In this document: positions 9,104 through 53,014 of the stretch, in pieces
How the letters are laid out: every line of letters begins with the position of its first letter
How positions within the stretch are numbered: position 1 is the first letter of the stretch
Assembly (NCBI GenBank): GCA_977017575.1
Contig: CDRNVI010000148.1
Location: 62,001-126,000, forward strand
Direction of reading: 5' to 3'
Source of the DNA: Paramoeba atlantica
Taxonomy: Eukaryota > Protista > Discosea
DNA: 64,000 nucleotides
Position numbers and translations under genes: made by a program
The notes under the pieces: generated by a model
What the model was told of the DNA's origin: nothing
The model's input: the letters and a program-made list of their open reading frames with translations, nothing else
The model's database searches: none

Positions 9104-11105
9104 GAGAAAAGATGAGTTTGTGATAACGTTCTATTCCTTCTTTTATGATTTTTGAAGTTGATTTTGTGTATATTTGAAAACATGGATGTAACTAACAAAG
9201 AGAGGAGAGAGAGAGAGAGAGAAGAGAAGAGAGAGAGAAAAGACAGGAGAAAAGAGAAAGAGAAAGAGAGAAAAAGAGAAAAGTCGGTATTATCTCAATA
9301 AACTTTTTGATGAATCACTCTCTTTCTCTCTCCTTTCTCTTCTTCTTCTTCTTCTTCTCACTCTTCTCAACCAAATAATAATAAAACAATACCACAAAAC
9401 CACAAGTTTGTTGAGATAAAGTTTGGGGAAGTGGCCAAACAGAGAGAGAAGAAGAAGAAGGAAACAATTCTTTTGTGTTCTTTTCTCCAAATCGATCAAT
9501 CTTTTCAAAACCTTTTCTTTTTCTTTTAGTTGAAGGAGAGAACAGAAAGAAAGAGAAGAGAAACAGAAAGAAAGAAGAGAAACAGAAACAAAAGAAAGAG
9601 AAGAAAAACTTTTCAAAACCTTTTCTTTTCTTTTAATAGAGAAAAACAAAGAAAGAAGAGAGAGTGGGAAAAGAGAGAGGGAAGAGGAAGAGAAAAGAGA
9701 AAGAAAGAGAGAAAAGAAAAAAGAAAAAAAACCTGGTTCTCTTTCCTTTCTCTCCTTTCTTCTCTCTTTCAACTTCTCCAAAGCAGAAACTCTCAAATCT
9801 TTCTTCAAATCAATTTTCTCTCTTCCTTCCAACAATCTTTCTTTCTTTCCATTACAAAATACAACAAAAAGAAAAAGAAAAAGAAAAAGAAAGAAGACAA
9901 TTTCAAAACTTCTTCTTTTTACCATTCCAAAAAGAACACAAAAAAAACCGAAAAAAGTCTTTTCTCTTTCTTTCTCTTTTCTCTCTTACTCTTTTTGGTT
10001 CATTGGAGTTGAGAAAGATTTTTTCAGTTTTTTTTGATTTTGTTTTCTGAAAAAAAAAAAAAAGAGAAAAACAACAAAATCCAAAAATTAATTGAAACCA
10101 AAAAGTCAGAAACCAAAAAATGATTTATTACCACCCTCCCTCTCTGAAAACCAAGCAAGAAACTAATACATTTTGAACCAATCATGCTCTTCTTCTTGAA
10201 ATTACCGAACAAGAGGGATTCTTTTCTGATCCGTTTTCCCTTTTTCTTTTTCTTCCCTTGATCCAATCTCTCTGAGATTTTGTGTTTTTTTTGTGTTTTT
10301 CTCAAAAAATGAAACACACTCCAACAAACCTTTTCTAAAAAAAACCAATTAAGAAACAAAATATTGGGCCATTGCTCTTTCTTGATCGAGATGGATTTCC
10401 TTTCTGATTCCATTTTTTGGGATTGGCCCCCAATCTCTTTCTTCTTTTGAAATCTCAAAACAAGACACAAAACCTTTTTCTTTTTCTGAAACCCAATGAA
10501 GAGAGAAGAGAGAGAGAGACCATCCACCATCTTTCTTTTTCATTGGCAACCTTAAAAACTGTTGCCCCTTTCTTCATGAAGCTAGTTGTTGATAAAAAAA
10601 ATGGTCGAAGAAGAAGAAGAAGAAGAAGAAATAAAAGGCAAGAATTTGAAACAAAGAAAACTGAAAAGAGAAAAAGAGAGAAACAATAACAGAAAACTGC
10701 GAGACAACGCTGTTTTTTTTCCTTTTTTCAAAGAGAGAAGGAGAGAGAAGGAAAGAGAGAAGAGAAAAGAAAGGAGAAAAAGAGAGAGAGAGAGAAGATC
10801 TTCTTCAAATCCACCAACAAAAACAAGATTGGTGTTGCTCGAAAAGAATCTTTCTCTTTCTCTTTTTGGTGATAACCAACAGAGAGAAATGAAAAAGAAT
10901 TTCAGTTCAATTTCAGTGAAAAAGGTTTTTGTTTCTTCTGTTAATTTTTGGTTTTGTTTCTTGTCGTTTTGTTCGTTTTTTGGTTTTGTTTCTTGTTCTT
11001 TTGTTAATTTTTGGTTTTGTTTCTTGGCGTTTTGTTAATTTTTGGTTTTTGTTTTTGTTTTATTTTTATTTTATTTTTGTTATTTTTTCTTTTTTTGTGA
11101 TATTT

Positions 11106-13204
11106 ATGGAAAGAACAAAAGAAAATGAGGAGAATCTTGTTGAGTTCTGTTGTGGCATTTGTTTCGAAGTCATGTCCTGGTCCAAAGTCCCAAGAATGCT
11201 TCCTTGTGGACATTCCTTCTGTTCTTCTTGTTTAAAGAAAATAACAAATCTGGGAAATACAAAGAAAGAGAAAGAAAGAGAAGAACTGAAACAAGAATCT
11301 TCTCCTTTGTTCCAAGAAGAAGAAAAGAAAACTTCCAAAAGTTGTTCTTGTCCCTTTTGTCGAGAGGAGTTTGATTGTGATTTGGTTGAAAATTTGAAGG
11401 TGAATTACACTCTCTCGATCACAGCCGATCTCCTCAGCTCTTCACCATCTCCTTTTTCTCTTGGTATAATTATTTTCTTTTCTTTTCTCTTTCTTTTTCC
11501 TTTTTCAAAAGAAATGATAAATTCATTTTTTTCTTTTTTCATAAAAACAGAAGAAATGAAATGTGTGAATTATGAGACTTGTGGTCAAAGGACCCAAATG
11601 TACTGCCCCAAATGCGAACTCTTTATCTGTGAATTGTGTGATCCTTTTCATACTTCTACAATATTTACTCAAAACCACTCTCGAATAAGACAACAACAAC
11701 AACAACAACAACAACAACCTCTCGAATGGAATGATGGGCGATTCTCCAAGTCGAAAAGATGTTCGGAACATCCCTCTGAAGTTGCAAACGCTTATTGTTT
11801 TGAATGTCGTATTTTTGTTTGCATTTGTTGTGTGTTGAATGGACCTCATGAGAACCACCGAGAGAATGTGAGTCCGTTTGAAGAATGTGTTCGAAAGAAG
11901 AGACAACAAGTACTCAAGATTGGGGGTGTTCTCAAGCAACAAATGAAAGAAGTTGAAAAAAAGAAAAGAGTGATTGAAGAAGAAGTTCAAGATTTAGAAG
12001 AAGAACAAAAAAAATTGGAAGATGAAATGCAACTATTGAAAGAGAAATTGGTTCAGAAACAGCAGAAAAGGAAAGAGGTAAATTTCGATTTAGATGAGAT
12101 ACGAATGAAACAGGATACAATCGATCGATTATCCAGAACACCAAAAGGTTTTTTAATTCTTGATGAAGATGTTTATTCAACAATTGTAGAAGCTGCAACA
12201 AATCTGGTTGGAGAACAACAAACAAGAAAACAGAAATTGGTTCTTGTCTGGAATGATCCTTCGCGAACTCCCCTCAGAATCTCTGTGAATGTCCCACGAG
12301 ATGGAAACATCTTCGATCTTAAAGAAGCAATTAGTAAGGTCTTTCTTTTTCTTTTTTTCTTTTTTTGTTTTCTACAAATCAATAATTGGTTTCTTTCAGT
12401 TAATTGGGATTCCACCAGAACCTATTCATGTGGCTGAAGTGTACCAATCGAAATTCTTCAAAGAATTTATAAACGAAGATCATTTATCAGAAATACGCCC
12501 TAATGACTTTATCTATGCATTTGAACTCACAAACAACTTCGGGGACCTATCTTTTTCTTCAAAGGTTTTTGTAATTTTCTTTTCTTTTTCTCAAAAGAAC
12601 AAATCACTCTTGATTTCTATCTAAATTTATTGTTCAAAGAAAATCGATAATGGCAACGTTTTGCATCTTCGAGTGATCCAAAGGAGGACGGACAATTATG
12701 AATTGTTTTCAATTCCAACAATCTGTTCTGTTTCTGAAACAACTACTTACAAGCAACTGTACAAGAAAGTATGTTCTTTTTTTTCTTTATTTTTCTTGAA
12801 TTGAAAAATTGATCATTTTGAATTTGGTCTTGCTCACACATTAGATGGTCCATACAATTCAAAGGCGTCTTTTGAAGAATTCAAACGAGATTAAGCCATT
12901 CTTTTCCAAGGTTCCTTTTGATTTTTATTTAATACCTCTTGTTTGTTATTGTAACCACTCACTCACTCCTCAACAGAGAGACCCCATAGATTACTCAAAC
13001 CCACTCTTCCAAATGGTGGTGACGAACAAACTTGGTTACCAAACCTTCGAAATCTTGTCAGATTTAGGAGATCGGCCCGTCTTTTCATCTCAAAAAGAGA
13101 AAAACATTTACATTGTGTTGAGATGGGAAATGGACACTCTTTCTTGTGTTTATGACGGAAAACACAATGACCCCAGAGAAATCCATGAGAGTTTTTGGGA
13201 GTGA
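11106..13204 (+). CDS. TRIM-like E3 ligase A: RING - B-box - B-box - coiled coil - USP4/11/15-type ubiquitin-like insertion module
   Basis: C3HC4 RING CGICFE..LPCGHSFCSSC..CPFC. B-boxes C..TCGQ..MYCPKCELFICELC..H..H and CSEH..AYCFEC..VCICC..H..H. Heptad coiled coil. C-terminus LVWNDPSRTPLRISVNVPRDGNIFDLKEAISKLIGIPPEPIHVAEVYQSKFFKEF..DFIYAFE..LFSIP..LYKK..LRW..HES. Six exons; ATG at 11106 (the longer track ORF start lies in T-rich leader). Confidence 0.88.
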
Positions 13205-13248
13205 AAGAATCTTTTTATTCAGAAGAAAACCGTTTTCTCTCCTCTTCA

Positions 13249-13274
13249 CTATCCTCCAAGAGTAAGGTAATAAA
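13249..13274 (-). pseudogene. Last 8 codons (LYYLTLGG-stop) of the neighbouring secreted-protein gene, left at the duplication breakpoint
   Basis: CTATCCTCCAAGAGTAAGGTAATAAA matches the 3' ends at 15626-15651 and 17262-17287, then switches abruptly to unrelated sequence. Confidence 0.8.
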
Positions 13275-13542
13275 ATTTCTCTTGAACAAGATAGATTCTT
13301 TTCTGATCTGTTCCCTTTTGATGCAATCTCTTGGTTCTTTTGAAAGAACAGAATTCTCTCAACCTTTTCTGAAATTCCTCGAATAACAGAAAACTGCGAG
13401 ACAACGCTGAATTTTTCCTGTTCCGTCGAGAGAGAAGGAAAAGAGGAAGAAGAGAACTTTTTTGTTTTTGTGGTTCTTGTTTTTGGTTTTTGTTTTTGTT
13501 TTATTTTTTTTGTTATTTGGTGTTTCTTTTTTTGTTTTACTT

Positions 13543-15582
13543 ATGGAAAGAACAAAAGAAAATGAGGAGAGTCTTGTTGAGTTCTGTTGTGGCATTTGTT
13601 TCGAAGTCATGTCCTGGTCCAAAGTCCCAAGAATGCTTCCTTGTGGACATTCCTTCTGTTCTTCTTGTTTAAAGAAAATAACAAATCTGGGAAATACAAA
13701 GAAAGAGAAAGAAAAAGAAGAAAAGAAAACATCCAAAATTTGTTCTTGTCCTTATTGTCGAGAGGAGTTTGATTGTGACTTTGATTGTGAAAATTTGAAG
13801 GTGAATTCCACTCTCTCGATCACAGCCGATCTCCTCAGCTCTTCGCCATCTCCTTTTTCTCTTGGTATCATTCTTTTCTTTTCTTTTTCTTTTTCCTTTT
13901 TCCTTTTTCAAAAGAAATGATAAATTCATTTTTTTCTTTTTTCATAAAAAACAGAAGAAATGAAATGTGCGAATTATGAGACTTGTGGTCAAAGGACCCA
14001 AATGTACTGCCCCAAATGCGAACTCTTTATCTGTGAATTGTGTGATCCTTTTCATACTTCTACAATATTTACTCAAAACCACTCTCGAATAAGACAACCT
14101 CTCGAATGGAATGGTGGGCGATTCTCCAAGTCGAAAAGATGTTCGGAACATCCCTCTGAAGTTGCAAACGCTTATTGTTTTGAATGTCGTATTTTTGTTT
14201 GTATTTGTTGTGTGTTGAATGGACCTCATGAGAACCACCGAGAGAATGTGAGTCCGTTTGAAGAATGTGTTCAAAAGAAGAGACAACAAGTGCTCAAGAT
14301 TGGGGGTGTTCTCAAGCAACAAACGAAAGAAGTTGAAAAAAAGAAAAGAGTGATTGAAGAAGAAGTTCAAGATTTAGAAGAAGAACAAAAAAAATTGGAA
14401 GATGAAATGCAACTATTGAAAGAGAAATTGGTTCAGAAACAGCAGAAAAGGAAAGAGGTGAATTTCGATTTAGATGAGATACGAATGAAACAGGATACAA
14501 TCGATCGATTATCCAGAACACCAAAGGGTTTTTTAATTCTTGATGAAGATGTTTATTCAACAATTGTAGAAGCTGCAACAAATTTGGTTGGAGAACAGCA
14601 AACAAGAAAACAGAAATTGGTTCTTGTCTGGAATAACCCTTCGCGAACTCCCCTCAGAATCTCTGTGAATGTCCCACGAGATGGAAACATCTTCGATCTT
14701 AAAGAAGCAATTAGTAAGGTCTTTTTTTTCTTTTTTTGTTTTTTTGTTTCTACAAATCAATAATTGGTTTCTTTCAGTTAATTGGGATTCCACCAGAACC
14801 TATTCATGTGGCTGAAGTGTACCAATCGAAATTCTTCAAAGAATTTATAAACGAAGATCATTTATCAAAAATACGCCCTAATGACTTTATCTATGCATTT
14901 GAACTCACAAACAACTTCGGTGACCCATCTTTTTCTTCAAAGGTTTTTGTAATTTTCTTTTCTTTTTCTCAAAAGAACAAACCACTCTTGATTTTGATCT
15001 AAATTTATTGTTCAAAGAAAATCGATAATGGCAACGTTTTGCATCTTCGAGTGACCCAAATGAAAATGGGCCCTTTGAAATTGTTTTCAATTCCAACAAT
15101 CTGTTCTGTTTCTGAAACAACTACTTACAAGCAACTGTACAAGAAAGTATGTTCTTTTTTTTTTATTTTTTTCTTGAATTGAAAAATTGATCATTTTGAA
15201 TTTGGTCTTGCTCACACATTAGATGGTCCATACAATTCAAAGGCGTCTTTTGAAGAATTCAAACGAGATTAAACCATTCTTTTCCAAGGTTTCTTTTTAT
15301 TTTGATTTAATACCTCTTGTTTGTTATTGTAACCACTCACTCACTCCTCGACAGAGAGACCCCATAGATTACTCAAACCCACTCTTCCAAATGGTGGTGA
15401 CGAACAAACTTGGTTACCAAACCTTCGAAAGCTTGTCAGATTTAGGAGATCGGCCCGTCTTTTCATCTCAAAAAGAGAAAAACATTTACATTGTGTTGAG
15501 ATGGGAAATGGACTCTCTTTCTCGTGTTTATGACGGAGAACACAATGACCCCAGAGAAATCCATGAGAGTTATTGGGAGTGA
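13543..15582 (+). CDS. TRIM-like E3 ligase B (paralog of A, same architecture)
   Basis: Same domains and intron positions as A. Lacks most of the poly-Q run (single CAA versus CAA x9 at 11691-11717 in A) and has a shorter RING insertion. Confidence 0.88.
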
Positions 15583-15625
15583 AAGAATCTTTTTATTCAG
15601 AAGAAAACCGTTTTCTCTCCCTTCA

Positions 15626-16840
15626 CTATCCTCCGAGAGTAAGGTAATAAAGTCTCACTGAAACACTTGCAATATCAATACGACTCCCACCGGGACAACC
15701 TTCACAAATATTCGTTACATAAATATAATTGGTCCCTCCCCCGTAAACATACCCAGGCCACCCATTTTGATACAAAGTCGATTGTGAGAAAAGCCAAGAA
15801 CCATCACAACCTTTGGTTGTACAATAATCTGGATCTTGAGGAGGAGACAACATTTGTGGGTAAATTGTTTGATTAATTGCTGGTGGGAAAGAAAGAAAAT
15901 TTGTCAATTTAAAATAGAACAACAAAAAGGAAAAAAAGAAAAAGAAGGAAAAAAATACGTGAAATTCTTCCCATGTACACTGACATACTCGCATTTTGAG
16001 AGCAAGTTCCATCACCAAAAAACCTTCCAAAAAACTCAAATTCAGCTGTCACAAGTCCTGATTGACTTGGTAAAGGATCACGAAAATAGTATCTCATTGT
16101 TGTTCCAACAGACATTGTTCGAACAGATCGCGCTCCACATTGTCCCGGAGTTCGAGTGGCAGATGTTCCACCAGTATAGTAGGTAGCATTCATTGCAACT
16201 GATGAAAATCCATAGACATTTGGGGAATAATAAACTGTTAATTGTGCTGAGTTGAGACAAGAAACGTCATAAAAACTGGTCACTGAAAAATTGTTTTCTC
16301 CTCCAAGATTCATTCCTGGAAATCCATTTTGTGCTACAGTTGCCAACGTAATCGATCCATCACAAGTATTACACTCACATCGAACAGGACTTTCTTGAGC
16401 AGACAGAATGTTAATCGCATATCCATTCACATACGCACCAAGATCAGTTAGATCTTCTCCCTCACAACCATAAGAACCAAGGAGAGTTACCACCATTTTG
16501 GTGACCATGGAACCAACAGGGGTTCGGTCGGTGAAAGTAAAGTTTCCATCGTGCCAATTTGGTCGATTCGAACACTGAGAAAAAGAAAAGAAAGTGAGTT
16601 GAATGTTCTTGTGGAAACAAACAAACGAAAAAGAACCGCATATTCTCCAGGATCACCACATTGAGTGCAGATCGCGGGATTTCCGGTCCAGCTGAACGAT
16701 GTTGTGTAAGAATCTGCAGGTGGTGGTGGTGGTGGTGGAGGTGGAGGTGGAGGTGGTGGTGAAGGTGCAGGTGAAGGTGCTAAACCACCATGGACGATGA
16801 CCAAAAAAAGAGAGAGAAGAAGGAAAGAGGGAGAAAACAT
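15626..16840 (-). CDS. Secreted protein A: signal peptide, poly-Pro linker, two tandem Cys-containing modules of unknown family
   Basis: MFSPSFLLLSLFLVIVHGG signal; PSPAPSPPPPPPPP linker; module 1 ICTQCGDPGEYAC..FTD..GSYGC..CECNTCDGS..NGFPGMNLGGEN; module 2 FRDPLP..GRFFGDGTC..YCTTKGCDGS..NGWPGYVYGGGTN. Three exons. Confidence 0.85.
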
Positions 16841-17261
16841 TTTCAGAAAAATGGTTTTGTTTTTCTTTGACGTTGAGGAACAAAATAGAAAAAAACACCG
16901 CCCACTCCTTTTCATTTTCTGAGAATTGCTTTTTTGTTCGTCATAGATACATCCAAATCACTACCTAGACGTTTTTGATTGTTTGAGTTATTCAGTTTTG
17001 ATACTTTTTCAAAATCAAAAAAATCCCACTCCAAAAAAGAAATGAATGTTTTTGTTCAATGAAAAAGGAATTTTTTGGCTTTTTCCTTTCGAAATTCAGC
17101 GATTGTTTTCTAAAAACTCGAATCGAACCAAAGTTGCTTTTTCCTTGCGAATTCTTTTTCATTCATACAAGATTTCTTGGAAAAACTCATTTTCACTTTC
17201 TGCACCAGAACCACCAATATGGATTCAAATTGTCATTTAATTTATTGCATTCTTTGAGTCC

Positions 17262-50851: not shown

Positions 50852-53014
50852 ATGCAGTTACGAGGGGGAAAAAGGAAGAGAGAGGAGAATGAGTTGGAGA
50901 AAGAAGAAAAAGTTAAAGAGAATGAGATTCAAGGAGAAACAAGAAGGATAAAGAAGGGTGAGCTTGATGAAAAAACCGTTGGGGAAGGTTTTCGATGTGG
51001 AATCTGTTTTGAGATAATGAGTTGGGAGAGATCGCCAAGAGTGTTGCCATGTGGACATTCTTTTTGTTCTGAATGCCTCTCCAAGCTTCTTCATATTCAA
51101 CAACAACAACAACAACCCCAAACACCACCCAGCTCCTCTCTTCATGGAGATTCTGATGTCCCTCCTCACTTTCCAGAACCACAAATCCCTCATCGCCTCT
51201 CTCGAACCACCCCTCCAACTCATCTGATTGATAAACGAGTAACTCTTCCCACTCCCCTCTCCTCCTCCTCCACCTCCTCCTCCTCTTCTTCGATTTCATT
51301 TTCATTTTCTTTTTCTTCAGGAGAGGTTGGAACAAGTAGTGTGGGAAAGGGTAATTGTCCTTTTTGTCGAAGTGTAATTGAGTGCAAGTCGATCGAATCT
51401 CTCCCCCACAATTATTTAATCCCTGAAACGATTGATGTTCTTCTTTCTTCTCAAGTATTATCTTTAGATCATTCACCAGGTTTGAGTTTTGAATTATTTT
51501 TCTCTCCTTTTTCTTTGTCTCTGATCTTTTTCTCAATTTCGTGAATTTGGAACAGAAGAAAAATCGAGATGCGTCAACTTTAAAAGATGTGGGGAGCAAA
51601 CATCGATGTATTGCCCCAATTGCGAAGTATTCATTTGTGATTCCTGTAATTTATCTCATTCTTCAAGCGTCTTTACTCAGAATCACAAACGGCAACAACA
51701 ATCTTCTTATTCTGCTGGTGGTGGTTCAAATTCGTTCGAAACAATCAAGAAGAAACATTGTTCTGAACACTCTTCTGAGTTTGTGTTTGGGTATTGTTTT
51801 GGGTGTTCTGTTTTTGTTTGTGGTTGTTGTATTTTGGGGAGTCATAGTGAACATAAGGAAATGATATTTTCACTTGCTGAAAGTGCGAAAAAAAGAAGAG
51901 ATCAAGTTGCAAAGATTGGAGATGATCTGAGGAGAAGAATGCAAGTTATTGAAAAGATACAACAGGAGAATGTAGATGAAATCAAGTCATTGAAGGAGAA
52001 ATTAATGAAGAAAGAGAAGGAGCAAAAAGAATTAGAGTTGGAAATTGGGGACTTGAAGATGAGACATGATACAATTGGTCGATTGTCTAATATGCCGACA
52101 GATGATTCGATTTTGAATGAAAATATCTTTTCAACACTTCTCCAAACTGCCAATGATCTTGTGGATGAGATGATCCAAAAGAAAGAAACATTCGAGGAGA
52201 GGGAAGATACTCGTGAACTTCAAGTTTCCTTTCCTTGGGAAGGATCTCCATGGGGAGTCAGCGCGAATAGTGGAGGGAACATTCTTGTGGCTGAAAGGAT
52301 GAAAAATGTAACGCTGAGGAATCGAGAAAATGGATCTCTTATTCGGACATTTGACTCTCTTAATCGCTCTTTTGGATTATTTGATGATCCAATCGATGTT
52401 TCATGTGGAACAGAGGATCAAGTTGTTGTCCTTGATACCGCGAAATGTCAAGTTGTGATATTCAACAAAGAAGGCCACTATGTCAGGTCCTTTGGATCAT
52501 GTGGTTCTCGATATGGCGAATTTAAAGGTCCTTGTAGCGTGGTAGTTGATAAAGAAAATCAAATTATTGTTGCTGATAGTGGTAATCACCGAATTCAAGT
52601 ATTTGGATCTGATGGGAGATTTATTCGATGTTTTGGGAGATAGAAGGGCAGTTCTTCTCTCCTACTGGAGTGGCGATTGATCGAGATGGACATCTTGTTA
52701 TTTCGGACCTTGGAAATCATCGAATTCAAGTGATGGGAATTGAAGGGAATTTTCTTTTTGCTTTTGGAAGTTACGGACCAAAAGATTCTGAATTGAGTTT
52801 TCCACAGAGCGTTTCAGTGGATGGAAAAGGTCGGATTGTTGTTTGTGATTCAGGAAATGAACGGATGTGTGTTTTTGAAAAAGATGGAACTTTTCTTTTT
52901 TCTTTTGGTGATGGTAAACTGAACAGTCCTCGTTGTGTTGCGAGTGATAGATATGGCCATATTATTTCTGATTGTTTTTTGGAAGGTGAAAAGACTGTTC
53001 AATTGTGGTTGTAA
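50852..53014 (+). pseudogene. TRIM-NHL gene (RING - B-box x2 - coiled coil - NHL beta-propeller) with a frameshift in the NHL repeats
   Basis: RING CGICFEIMSWERSPRVLPCGHSFC..CPFC. B-boxes and the intron after the RING match TRIM A/B. NHL repeats: FKGPCSVVVD..IIVADSGNHRIQVFGSDGRFIRCFG, FFSPTGVAID..VISDLGNHRIQV, SFPQSVSVD. The frame changes with TAG at 52641-52643 (about 10 nt short of the repeat consensus). This may be an assembly error. Confidence 0.8.

Follow-up and report, generated by a model that had tools for sequence, protein, structure and literature searches.

Tandem TRIM-like ligase genes of Paramoeba atlantica with a C-terminal module apparently derived from the intra-catalytic insert of a USP4/11/15-type deubiquitinase

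TRIM Ligases, USP Inserts and a Gene Pair That Joins Them

To our knowledge, the C-terminal domains of TRIM ligases, which follow a chassis of RING finger, B-boxes and coiled coil (RBCC), belong to the COS-FN3-SPRY, SPRY, PHD-BROMO, filamin-NHL, MATH, ARF and transmembrane (TM) classes, and none of them is an insert of a USP deubiquitinase. In the TRIM5-cyclophilin A fusions (TRIMCyp) the C-terminal domain of a TRIM chassis has been swapped for a captured host module, and TRIM37 carries a MATH domain, a type shared with USP7, so that a TRIM and a USP have one kind of recognition domain. The deubiquitinases USP4, USP11, USP15 and Ubp12 bear within their catalytic domain an insert that is usually drawn in the literature as a second ubiquitin-like domain (UBL2) plus a disordered loop, and the function of this insert is still debated. 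Among the human enzymes, the USP4 insert is sufficient for binding of CtIP/MRN (PMC4643306), the UBL2 of USP15 is required for association with the 19S/26S proteasome, which UBL2 alone shifts in native gels (preprint bioRxiv 10.1101/2025.08.13.670075), and the UBL2 of USP11 sets the K48 chain preference (PMC12718135). Here we describe two tandem genes from a 64,000-nucleotide (nt) stretch of Paramoeba atlantica DNA (GenBank assembly GCA_977017575.1, contig CDRNVI010000148.1, positions 62,001 to 126,000; hereafter the window, in whose coordinates positions are given), both of which appear from their sequence to encode RBCC ligases whose C-terminal domain derives from the insert of the organism's own DUSP-UBL-USP deubiquitinase.

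The module of these proteins is homologous and collinear with the USP4/11/15/Ubp12 insert over its whole length, its best match being the insert of a USP encoded in the same genome at locus L003, but it is located at the C-terminus of a RING/B-box/coiled-coil protein that has neither a Cys box nor a His box. TRIM-NHL ligases share with these proteins the RING, B-box 1, B-box 2 and coiled-coil chassis as well as the intron after the RING exon, whereas the NHL propeller is replaced by a predicted double ubiquitin-like (di-UBL) unit in genes 1 and 2. For TRIMCyp a whole intronless cDNA was retroposed, while here an internal gene segment was copied as genomic DNA together with its introns, and the MATH domain of TRIM37 stands on its own and was not cut out of a catalytic core as an insert. 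The UBL4-5 unit of USP7 (PF14533) superposes on a proxy model of the insert, and the corresponding USP7_C2 family matches USP4/15 inserts; on the other hand, the identity is only about 13%, the TRIM pieces give no Pfam match, and the USP7 unit is placed behind the catalytic domain and acts together with an activating peptide at the C-terminus. The pair represents a new C-terminal class within the known TRIM-like ligases and not a new kind of system.

The C-terminal Module Corresponds to a Whole USP Insert

In the product of gene 1 the module comprises 235 amino acids (aa 343-577; 12219-13201, + strand, with four introns inside), which follow the coiled coil and run up to the stop codon instead of being embedded in a USP domain. 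The first UBL occupies aa 348-425 (12234-12528, +) and the second, UBL-like half aa 444-574 (12658-13192, +); gene 2 carries the same module at 14599-15579 (+). Exon 3, which encodes 55 aa, retrieved the intra-catalytic UBL of USP19 from the PDB (6kqv, E 0.003), and against 1.84 billion representative proteins it gave three significant matches only, all of them to USP inserts. P0009 is a metagenomic USP4/15-type fragment matched directly after the first zinc pair of the fingers, and P0010 a USP19-like protein matched at the UBL inside its catalytic domain. P0008, with 62% identity, comes from another contig of the same assembly (ENA ERZ24900291), the locus L003, where it is placed between open reading frames (ORFs) called Ubiquitin_3 and UCH by Pfam. 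The exons of L003 yield DUSP in two pieces, Ubiquitin_3 (25 bits, cut-off 24) and UCH with its Cys box (2e-10), middle part (3e-11) and His box (3e-24), indicating that L003 encodes the organism's own DUSP-UBL-USP deubiquitinase of the USP4/11/15/Ubp12 type.

When compared with L003 by tblastn (L003 9779-11072), the TRIM protein aligns collinearly through aa 343-425, 442-500 and 504-575 (E 8e-27, 8e-15 and 3e-23, respectively), with 57.5% identity between module and insert over 233 aligned positions; the rate of synonymous substitution (dS) is saturated and that of non-synonymous substitution (dN) is 0.31. On the USP side VPVPKNKSQK/LVLVW marks the start of the similarity, where the finger strand behind the first CxxC pair has just ended, and DIHESY marks its end; ten residues separate DIHESY from the helix located ahead of the second zinc pair (D2 helix). 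On the TRIM side it begins at QTRKQK/LVLVW and ends at EIHESFWE, followed by the stop codon. By this alignment the captured segment is the whole insert with nothing missing and nothing extra, the boundaries matching within a few residues. No exon of the gene matches PF00443, the family of the USP Cys box and His box, and tblastn with pieces of D1 and D2 from the L003 USP gave only noise over window positions 10000-17000, without any remnant of the core; the module itself is predicted to have no deubiquitinase activity.

An earlier, sequence-only reading of this DNA had proposed that the region 11106-15582 encodes TRIM-like E3 ligases in which an RBCC part is joined to a USP insert; it is confirmed as to what it observed and supported as to how it interpreted this. 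Both genes are present at these coordinates, and so are all of the motifs that it quoted (QTRKQKLVLVW, LIGIPPEP, LFSIPTICSV, YKQLYKK, IVLRW and EIHES). The match does extend over the whole insert including the closing HES, the capture at domain boundaries is borne out to within a few residues of the limits of the insert in L003, and a Cys box or His box is lacking in the proteins, as that reading had stated, and around the genes as well.

The homology is not confined to the first UBL. The UBL half of the module matches 121 of the 121 USPs in a sample that spans animals, plants, fungi and protists, in each case at the position of the insert, and conservation within the module is highest in the first UBL, with 58-62 bits to USP15-like proteins. 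A USP-only profile, for which 62 inserts were taken from other organisms, matches aa 343-495 of the TRIM protein with 82 bits and has a second collinear stretch at 508-563, so that the profile match expected by the sequence-only reading is obtained; the half after the UBL, taken alone, scores 20.2 bits, compared to a maximum of 9.8 in 2000 shuffles. In named USP4/15 proteins such as P0032, P0034 and P0042 the elements follow one another as in the module. Homology of the C-terminal region to the entire intra-catalytic insert, beyond the first UBL, is thereby supported at the level of sequence. With 235 aa, compared to 283 aa for the L003 insert, the module has lost most of the low-complexity linker. 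In L003 (10146-10400) an acidic, Gly/Ser/Met-rich low-complexity stretch of about 48 aa separates the first UBL from the hairpin and is absent from the TRIM copies; the 111-nt intron of the same region is open and in frame, and ORF callers read through it, as in P0008.

Some searches with single pieces of the module, among them one of the ESM Atlas with the 55-aa exon 3 piece, were less informative. Pfam gave no match on the separate C-terminal exon pieces, which are too short, and a PDB sequence search with the last-exon piece found none; the exact-sequence cluster of the last exon consists of the two window copies only. The motif SVN..DGNIF of the module is similar to the first NHL blade of the paralogs, but it follows the USP sequence at the DNA level, so that the resemblance was put down to chance.

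A Predicted Di-UBL Fold

The fold was approached by proxy, for which a Daphnia USP15-like protein provided the insert (P0034:448-722) and 61 further inserts made up the alignment. Folded alone, the proxy reached a predicted local distance difference test (pLDDT) of 83.9 and a predicted template modeling (pTM) score of 0.78, with disorder confined to the internal linker, and its second UBL is assembled from segments on either side of the disordered loop. Foldseek and VIA-align placed USP7 UBL4-5 first (Foldseek E 2e-8; top PDB entries 2ylm and 5jtv), followed by ISG15 and di-ubiquitin, and the superposition on USP7 residues 887-1086 gave a Z of 15.2 and a root mean square deviation of 3.3 Å over 177 residues. 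Furthermore, the Pfam family USP7_C2 (PF14533) matches USP4/15 inserts above its cut-off. Among the AlphaFold DB clusters that match the proxy, every named match is a ubiquitinyl hydrolase, several others having no name. These results favor a description of the insert as a di-UBL unit of the USP7_C2/UBL4-5 kind. In alignment, each secondary-structure element of the proxy has its counterpart in the TRIM module, which may likewise be a self-contained di-UBL, in which the N- and C-terminal strands would lie in one folded body. Such an arrangement would explain why the unit tolerates both insertion into a USP finger and a terminal position.

The RBCC Chassis and Its TRIM-NHL Relatives

The RING finger of gene 1 (aa 16-88; 11151-11369, +, exon 1) matches PF13445 (1.2e-10) and PF00097 (1.8e-8), while that of gene 2 (13588-13767, +) was assigned from the sequence. 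All eight zinc ligands can be read (C-x2-C ... C-x-H-x2-C-x2-C ... C-x2-C), and the RING of gene 1 has an Ile in C-G-I-C and an Arg right after the last Cys (CPFCR). In gene 1 the variable long loop of the RING (11270-11310) is 13 residues longer than in gene 2. In exon 2 of gene 1, B-box 1 (11562-11678) and B-box 2 (11760-11858, both +) match PF00643 in two stretches (1.4e-9), and their Cys/His columns are invariant among seven paralogs in an alignment that includes TRIM-NHL paralogs. A (CAA)n poly-Q tract is located between the B-boxes of gene 1 (11689-11718) and is absent from gene 2. The coiled-coil region (11859-12215, +), delimited by AlphaFold2, tblastn and alignment, consists of a long helix and a short return helix that ends at NLVGE; on the exon 2 piece AlphaFold2 predicts an 86-residue helix (residues 110-195, block-mean pLDDT 73 to 98) and the return helix at 206-221. 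With RING, B-boxes and long coiled-coil helix all recognizable, the gene products can be assigned from sequence and model to the TRIM/RBCC chassis, and they are predicted to dimerize.

The closest relatives of this chassis are RING/B-box/coiled-coil/NHL genes of the same assembly, one in the window (50990-53014) and two on other contigs (L001 and L002), with identities of 32-38% by tblastn up to NLVGE and of 34-43% in the exon 2 alignment; the RBCC part of the window gene that aligns is 50990-52286, and for the coiled-coil region the matching stretch in the window is 51558-52286, again together with L001 and L002. The intron after the RING exon is common to genes 1 and 2 and these TRIM-NHL paralogs. 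The homology to them stops at NLVGE (aa 342), about five residues before the homology to the USP starts. A protein search with the RBCC part matched only ORF calls of the same assembly. No Pfam match to SPRY, NHL, MATH, PHD-BROMO, ARF, FN3 or COS was found on the exon pieces of gene 1, which is consistent with the placement of the C-terminal domain outside these TRIM classes by the sequence-only reading.

Gene Models and Transcripts

Gene 1 (11106-13204, +; 577 aa) was modeled from ORFs and sequence, in frame and with GT..AG introns, from the ATG at 11106 to the stop codon at 13202-13204, with exons at 11106-11463, 11551-12338, 12400-12564, 12640-12768, 12845-12910 and 12977-13204 (stop included). 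The model of its tandem paralog, gene 2 (13543-15582, +; 557 aa), was built in frame by analogy, from the ATG at 13543 to the stop codon at 15580-15582, with exons at 13543-13864, 13955-14718, 14778-14942, 15018-15146, 15223-15288 and 15355-15582. The two genes are arranged head to tail on the + strand, each with six exons and an intact frame, and all of their introns are GT..AG and 59-90 nt long. Intron 2 is 61 nt long in one copy and 59 nt in the other, which shifts the frame, and thus it cannot be coding.

Five public runs contain the sequence, and four of them were compared with the window, where X5 is an RNA library and the other three behave as DNA. Splice joints are present in X5 only: its record 23 contains the joint 11462 to 11550, while record 25, a single contig of 767 nt, joins 12211-12336, 12398-12557, 12633-12768, 12845-12908 and 12975-13242. 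Together the two records show that all five introns of gene 1 are removed and that splicing joins the end of exon 2 to the C-terminal exons, as the gene structure of the sequence-only reading demands. The same reading had put the C-terminal region at about 250 aa; its homology to the USP insert stands, but the length does not, since the 66-nt stretch 12911-12976, which is in frame and free of stop codons, is spliced out in the RNA as the fifth intron, leaving 235 aa. At window position 13194 an X5 contig carries a 12-nt in-frame insertion just before the stop codon, in which the last codons are tandemly repeated, and it also has several single-base differences from both window copies, indicating that the transcriptome stems from another isolate or from a third copy.

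Route and Direction of the Capture

The introns of the module are informative about its origin. TRIM introns 2 and 4 are found at the same codon boundary and in the same phase 0 as introns of the USP gene (after AISK in one and AVSE in the other for intron 2, and after LYKK in both for intron 4). Intron 5 shares the phase of a USP intron but is one codon off, beside a one-codon indel, and intron 3 lies about one codon away from a USP intron, with a different phase, in the variable linker. The shared introns imply that the module was copied as genomic DNA, from mid-exon to mid-exon, and exclude retroposition. The DNA similarity between TRIM and USP amounts to about 66% over coding blocks, one of which crosses intron 2 with gaps. 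A tree of inserts groups the two TRIM modules with the L003 USP as their sister, with a Shimodaira-Hasegawa-like approximate likelihood ratio test (SH-aLRT) support of 98, and places them inside the DUSP-type and outside the USP19-like group. Transfer in the reverse direction, by which a USP would have taken the module from a TRIM, was rejected, since every one of the 121 sampled USPs has the insert and the TRIM copies nest within the USP clade.

The capture was thus a partial duplication of genomic DNA from the organism's own USP gene, in which the internal introns were kept. The copied insert was fused in frame right behind the coiled coil, in place of the NHL propeller of the many paralogs in the genome, with a stop codon two to three codons past the last conserved motif of the insert. 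The module has been kept under purifying selection since the capture, and the whole gene was duplicated in tandem much later.

Divergence of the Two Copies

The proteins of genes 1 and 2 are about 95% identical in alignment, with a dS of 0.043 and introns that are 95% identical, and the dN/dS of the RBCC part between the paralogs is 0.29. The differences in the module are unevenly distributed. A patch of nine residues, IQRRTDNYE in gene 1 (12676-12702, +) and TQMKMGPLK in gene 2 (15054-15080, +), differs almost completely owing to 11 substitutions (10 non-synonymous, 1 synonymous) within 27 nt, as many as are found in the remaining 678 nt of the module. In the proxy model the patch falls on the long β-hairpin of the second UBL, at its tip, and a USP19-like protein has a MYND finger in the equivalent loop; the patch is therefore of interest with regard to the binding surface. 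Diversifying selection could have produced the patch, or it could be a conversion tract from an unseen copy.

Possible Functions and Competing Explanations

Overall, we consider the explanation quite likely in which a captured USP insert would serve as a di-UBL targeting domain. The proteins would act as TRIM-type E3 dimers, with the di-UBL as targeting domain because the C-terminal domain of a TRIM selects the target, and since the module is a paralog of the one with which the USP itself docks, the most likely binding partner or partners of the ligase are those of the USP insert, by analogy with the insert of the human enzymes. Ligase and USP could thus converge on one client or site with opposite chemistry. 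Among the functional options, such shared clients, recognized through paralogous reader modules, are favored tentatively, with the largest share of the probability yet short of a majority.

Several points weigh against the overall explanation. The dN/dS of the module between the paralogs is about 1.2 (0.7 without the patch), a value that is based on very few changes. The positions 12203-12211, beside the junction of coiled coil and module, are bridged by no single RNA contig; both flanks of this gap are part of one exon and one open frame, the RNA depth on them is 10.9 and 11.2, and the gap adjoins a position that varies between the paralogs, just before the junction. The X5 RNA contigs are only 95-99% identical to the window, which points to another isolate or copy as their source. 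Furthermore, the di-UBL fold of the TRIM module is carried over from the Daphnia USP15-like proxy, the docking role of the insert is taken from the human enzymes and not from the donor USP, and the mechanism, including the partner, the E3 activity and the dimerization, is what we infer from these comparisons.

The donor itself could be the target. The insert docks in cis on the core of its USP, and the module may do likewise in trans on the catalytic core of the donor or of another USP; the ligase would then recruit, inhibit, activate or ubiquitinate a USP instead of sharing its clients. USP7 UBL4-5, the structural twin of the insert (2ylm and 5jtv being the top matches), binds and activates its own catalytic domain, and the UBL2 insert of USP4 reportedly, in work of Luna-Vargas et al. 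from 2011, binds the USP4 core and partly inhibits it. Pairs of an E3 and a deubiquitinase are known, such as BRAP-USP15 (PMC3522295). However, the models give no contact information for such a pairing, and with divergence from the donor to 57.5% identity and saturated dS a retained core-binding surface can only be presumed, which leaves E3-deubiquitinase pairing as a rather unlikely option. Docking on a receptor is about equally unlikely: here the di-UBL would bring the ligase to a receptor of ubiquitin or UBLs, such as the 19S proteasome, and the E3 would be of a proteasome-associated or shuttle type. The need for UBL2 in the proteasome association of human USP15 and the strong conservation of the first UBL are in line with this, but the predicted binding site was found to be sterically doubtful (preprint bioRxiv 10.1101/2025.08.13.670075), and it is the whole di-UBL, not the first UBL alone, that is conserved in the TRIM proteins.

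An integrated bait appears improbable. In this scenario the copied insert mimics the host USP, and any protein of a parasite, virus or selfish element that seizes the USP insert would be trapped and ubiquitinated; the logic of TRIM5-CypA would have been reached independently in a protist, with the hairpin tip as the fast-evolving contact. The genome does hold large TRIM-NHL families, as seen in the ORF tables, and the modules of the paralogs, nearly identical elsewhere, differ across the exposed hairpin tip. On the other hand, only two copies are known, the patch could stem from gene conversion or relaxed constraint, and we know of no pathogen ligand of the USP4/15 insert.

Far less probable still is a functionless chimera, that is, transcribed debris of a partial duplication. 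The architecture is lineage-restricted and was found nowhere else in the searches, as debris might be, but both frames are intact and the five introns correctly spliced, dN relative to the donor is 0.31 whereas dS is saturated, every secondary-structure element has been kept, and the dN/dS of 0.29 in the RBCC part argues in the same direction. A gene-model artefact, with a chimeric contig or with a small gene of its own for the module, is hardly credible, as the break of the RNA contigs at 12203/12211 beside the junction is outweighed by a junction that lies inside one exon in a continuous frame without a start codon, is covered by DNA contigs of three other runs (record 12 of X2 spans 12194-12676) and recurs in both tandem copies.

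Distribution and Related Architectures

A USP-insert class of TRIM ligases, or an RBCC-USP-insert architecture, is not described in the literature searched, and the architecture had no counterpart in searches of proteins, AlphaFold DB clusters and JGI data, which used short queries and in which protist proteomes are sparse. With UCH families excluded, a search of the ESM Atlas with a USP insert brought up fragments of deubiquitinases and UBL families of USP7/USP47 only, and no ligase; a scan of JGI metagenomes with the last exon found no relative.

A second UBL module of deubiquitinase origin may be joined to a TRIM chassis at L002 (10001-12868; ENA ERZ24900291 ctg3731l), where P0004, one uninterrupted ORF, has a USP7_ICP0_bdg domain (PF12436, 1.7e-16, 60.8 bits) upstream of a RING, and the next ORF encodes B-box, coiled coil and NHL. 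If this is one gene, it would encode a TRIM-NHL protein with an N-terminal UBL unit of the USP7 type. Elsewhere on the same locus (L002:15150-16517), a single ORF contains the β and α subunit domains of nitrile hydratase in fused form (Pfam NHase_beta_C and NHase_alpha).

Implications for the USP Insert

The gene pair represents a C-terminal class of TRIM-like ligases for which no description was found, in which a predicted writer and an eraser of ubiquitin share one docking module. With the donor gene, the breakpoints and the shared introns preserved in one genome, it offers an unusually clean case of module capture between opposing classes of ubiquitin enzymes. It is also a natural transplant, in which the USP4/11/15 insert behaves as an autonomous and selectable unit outside a catalytic domain, and this argues that the main job of the insert is docking, beyond the tuning of catalysis in cis.

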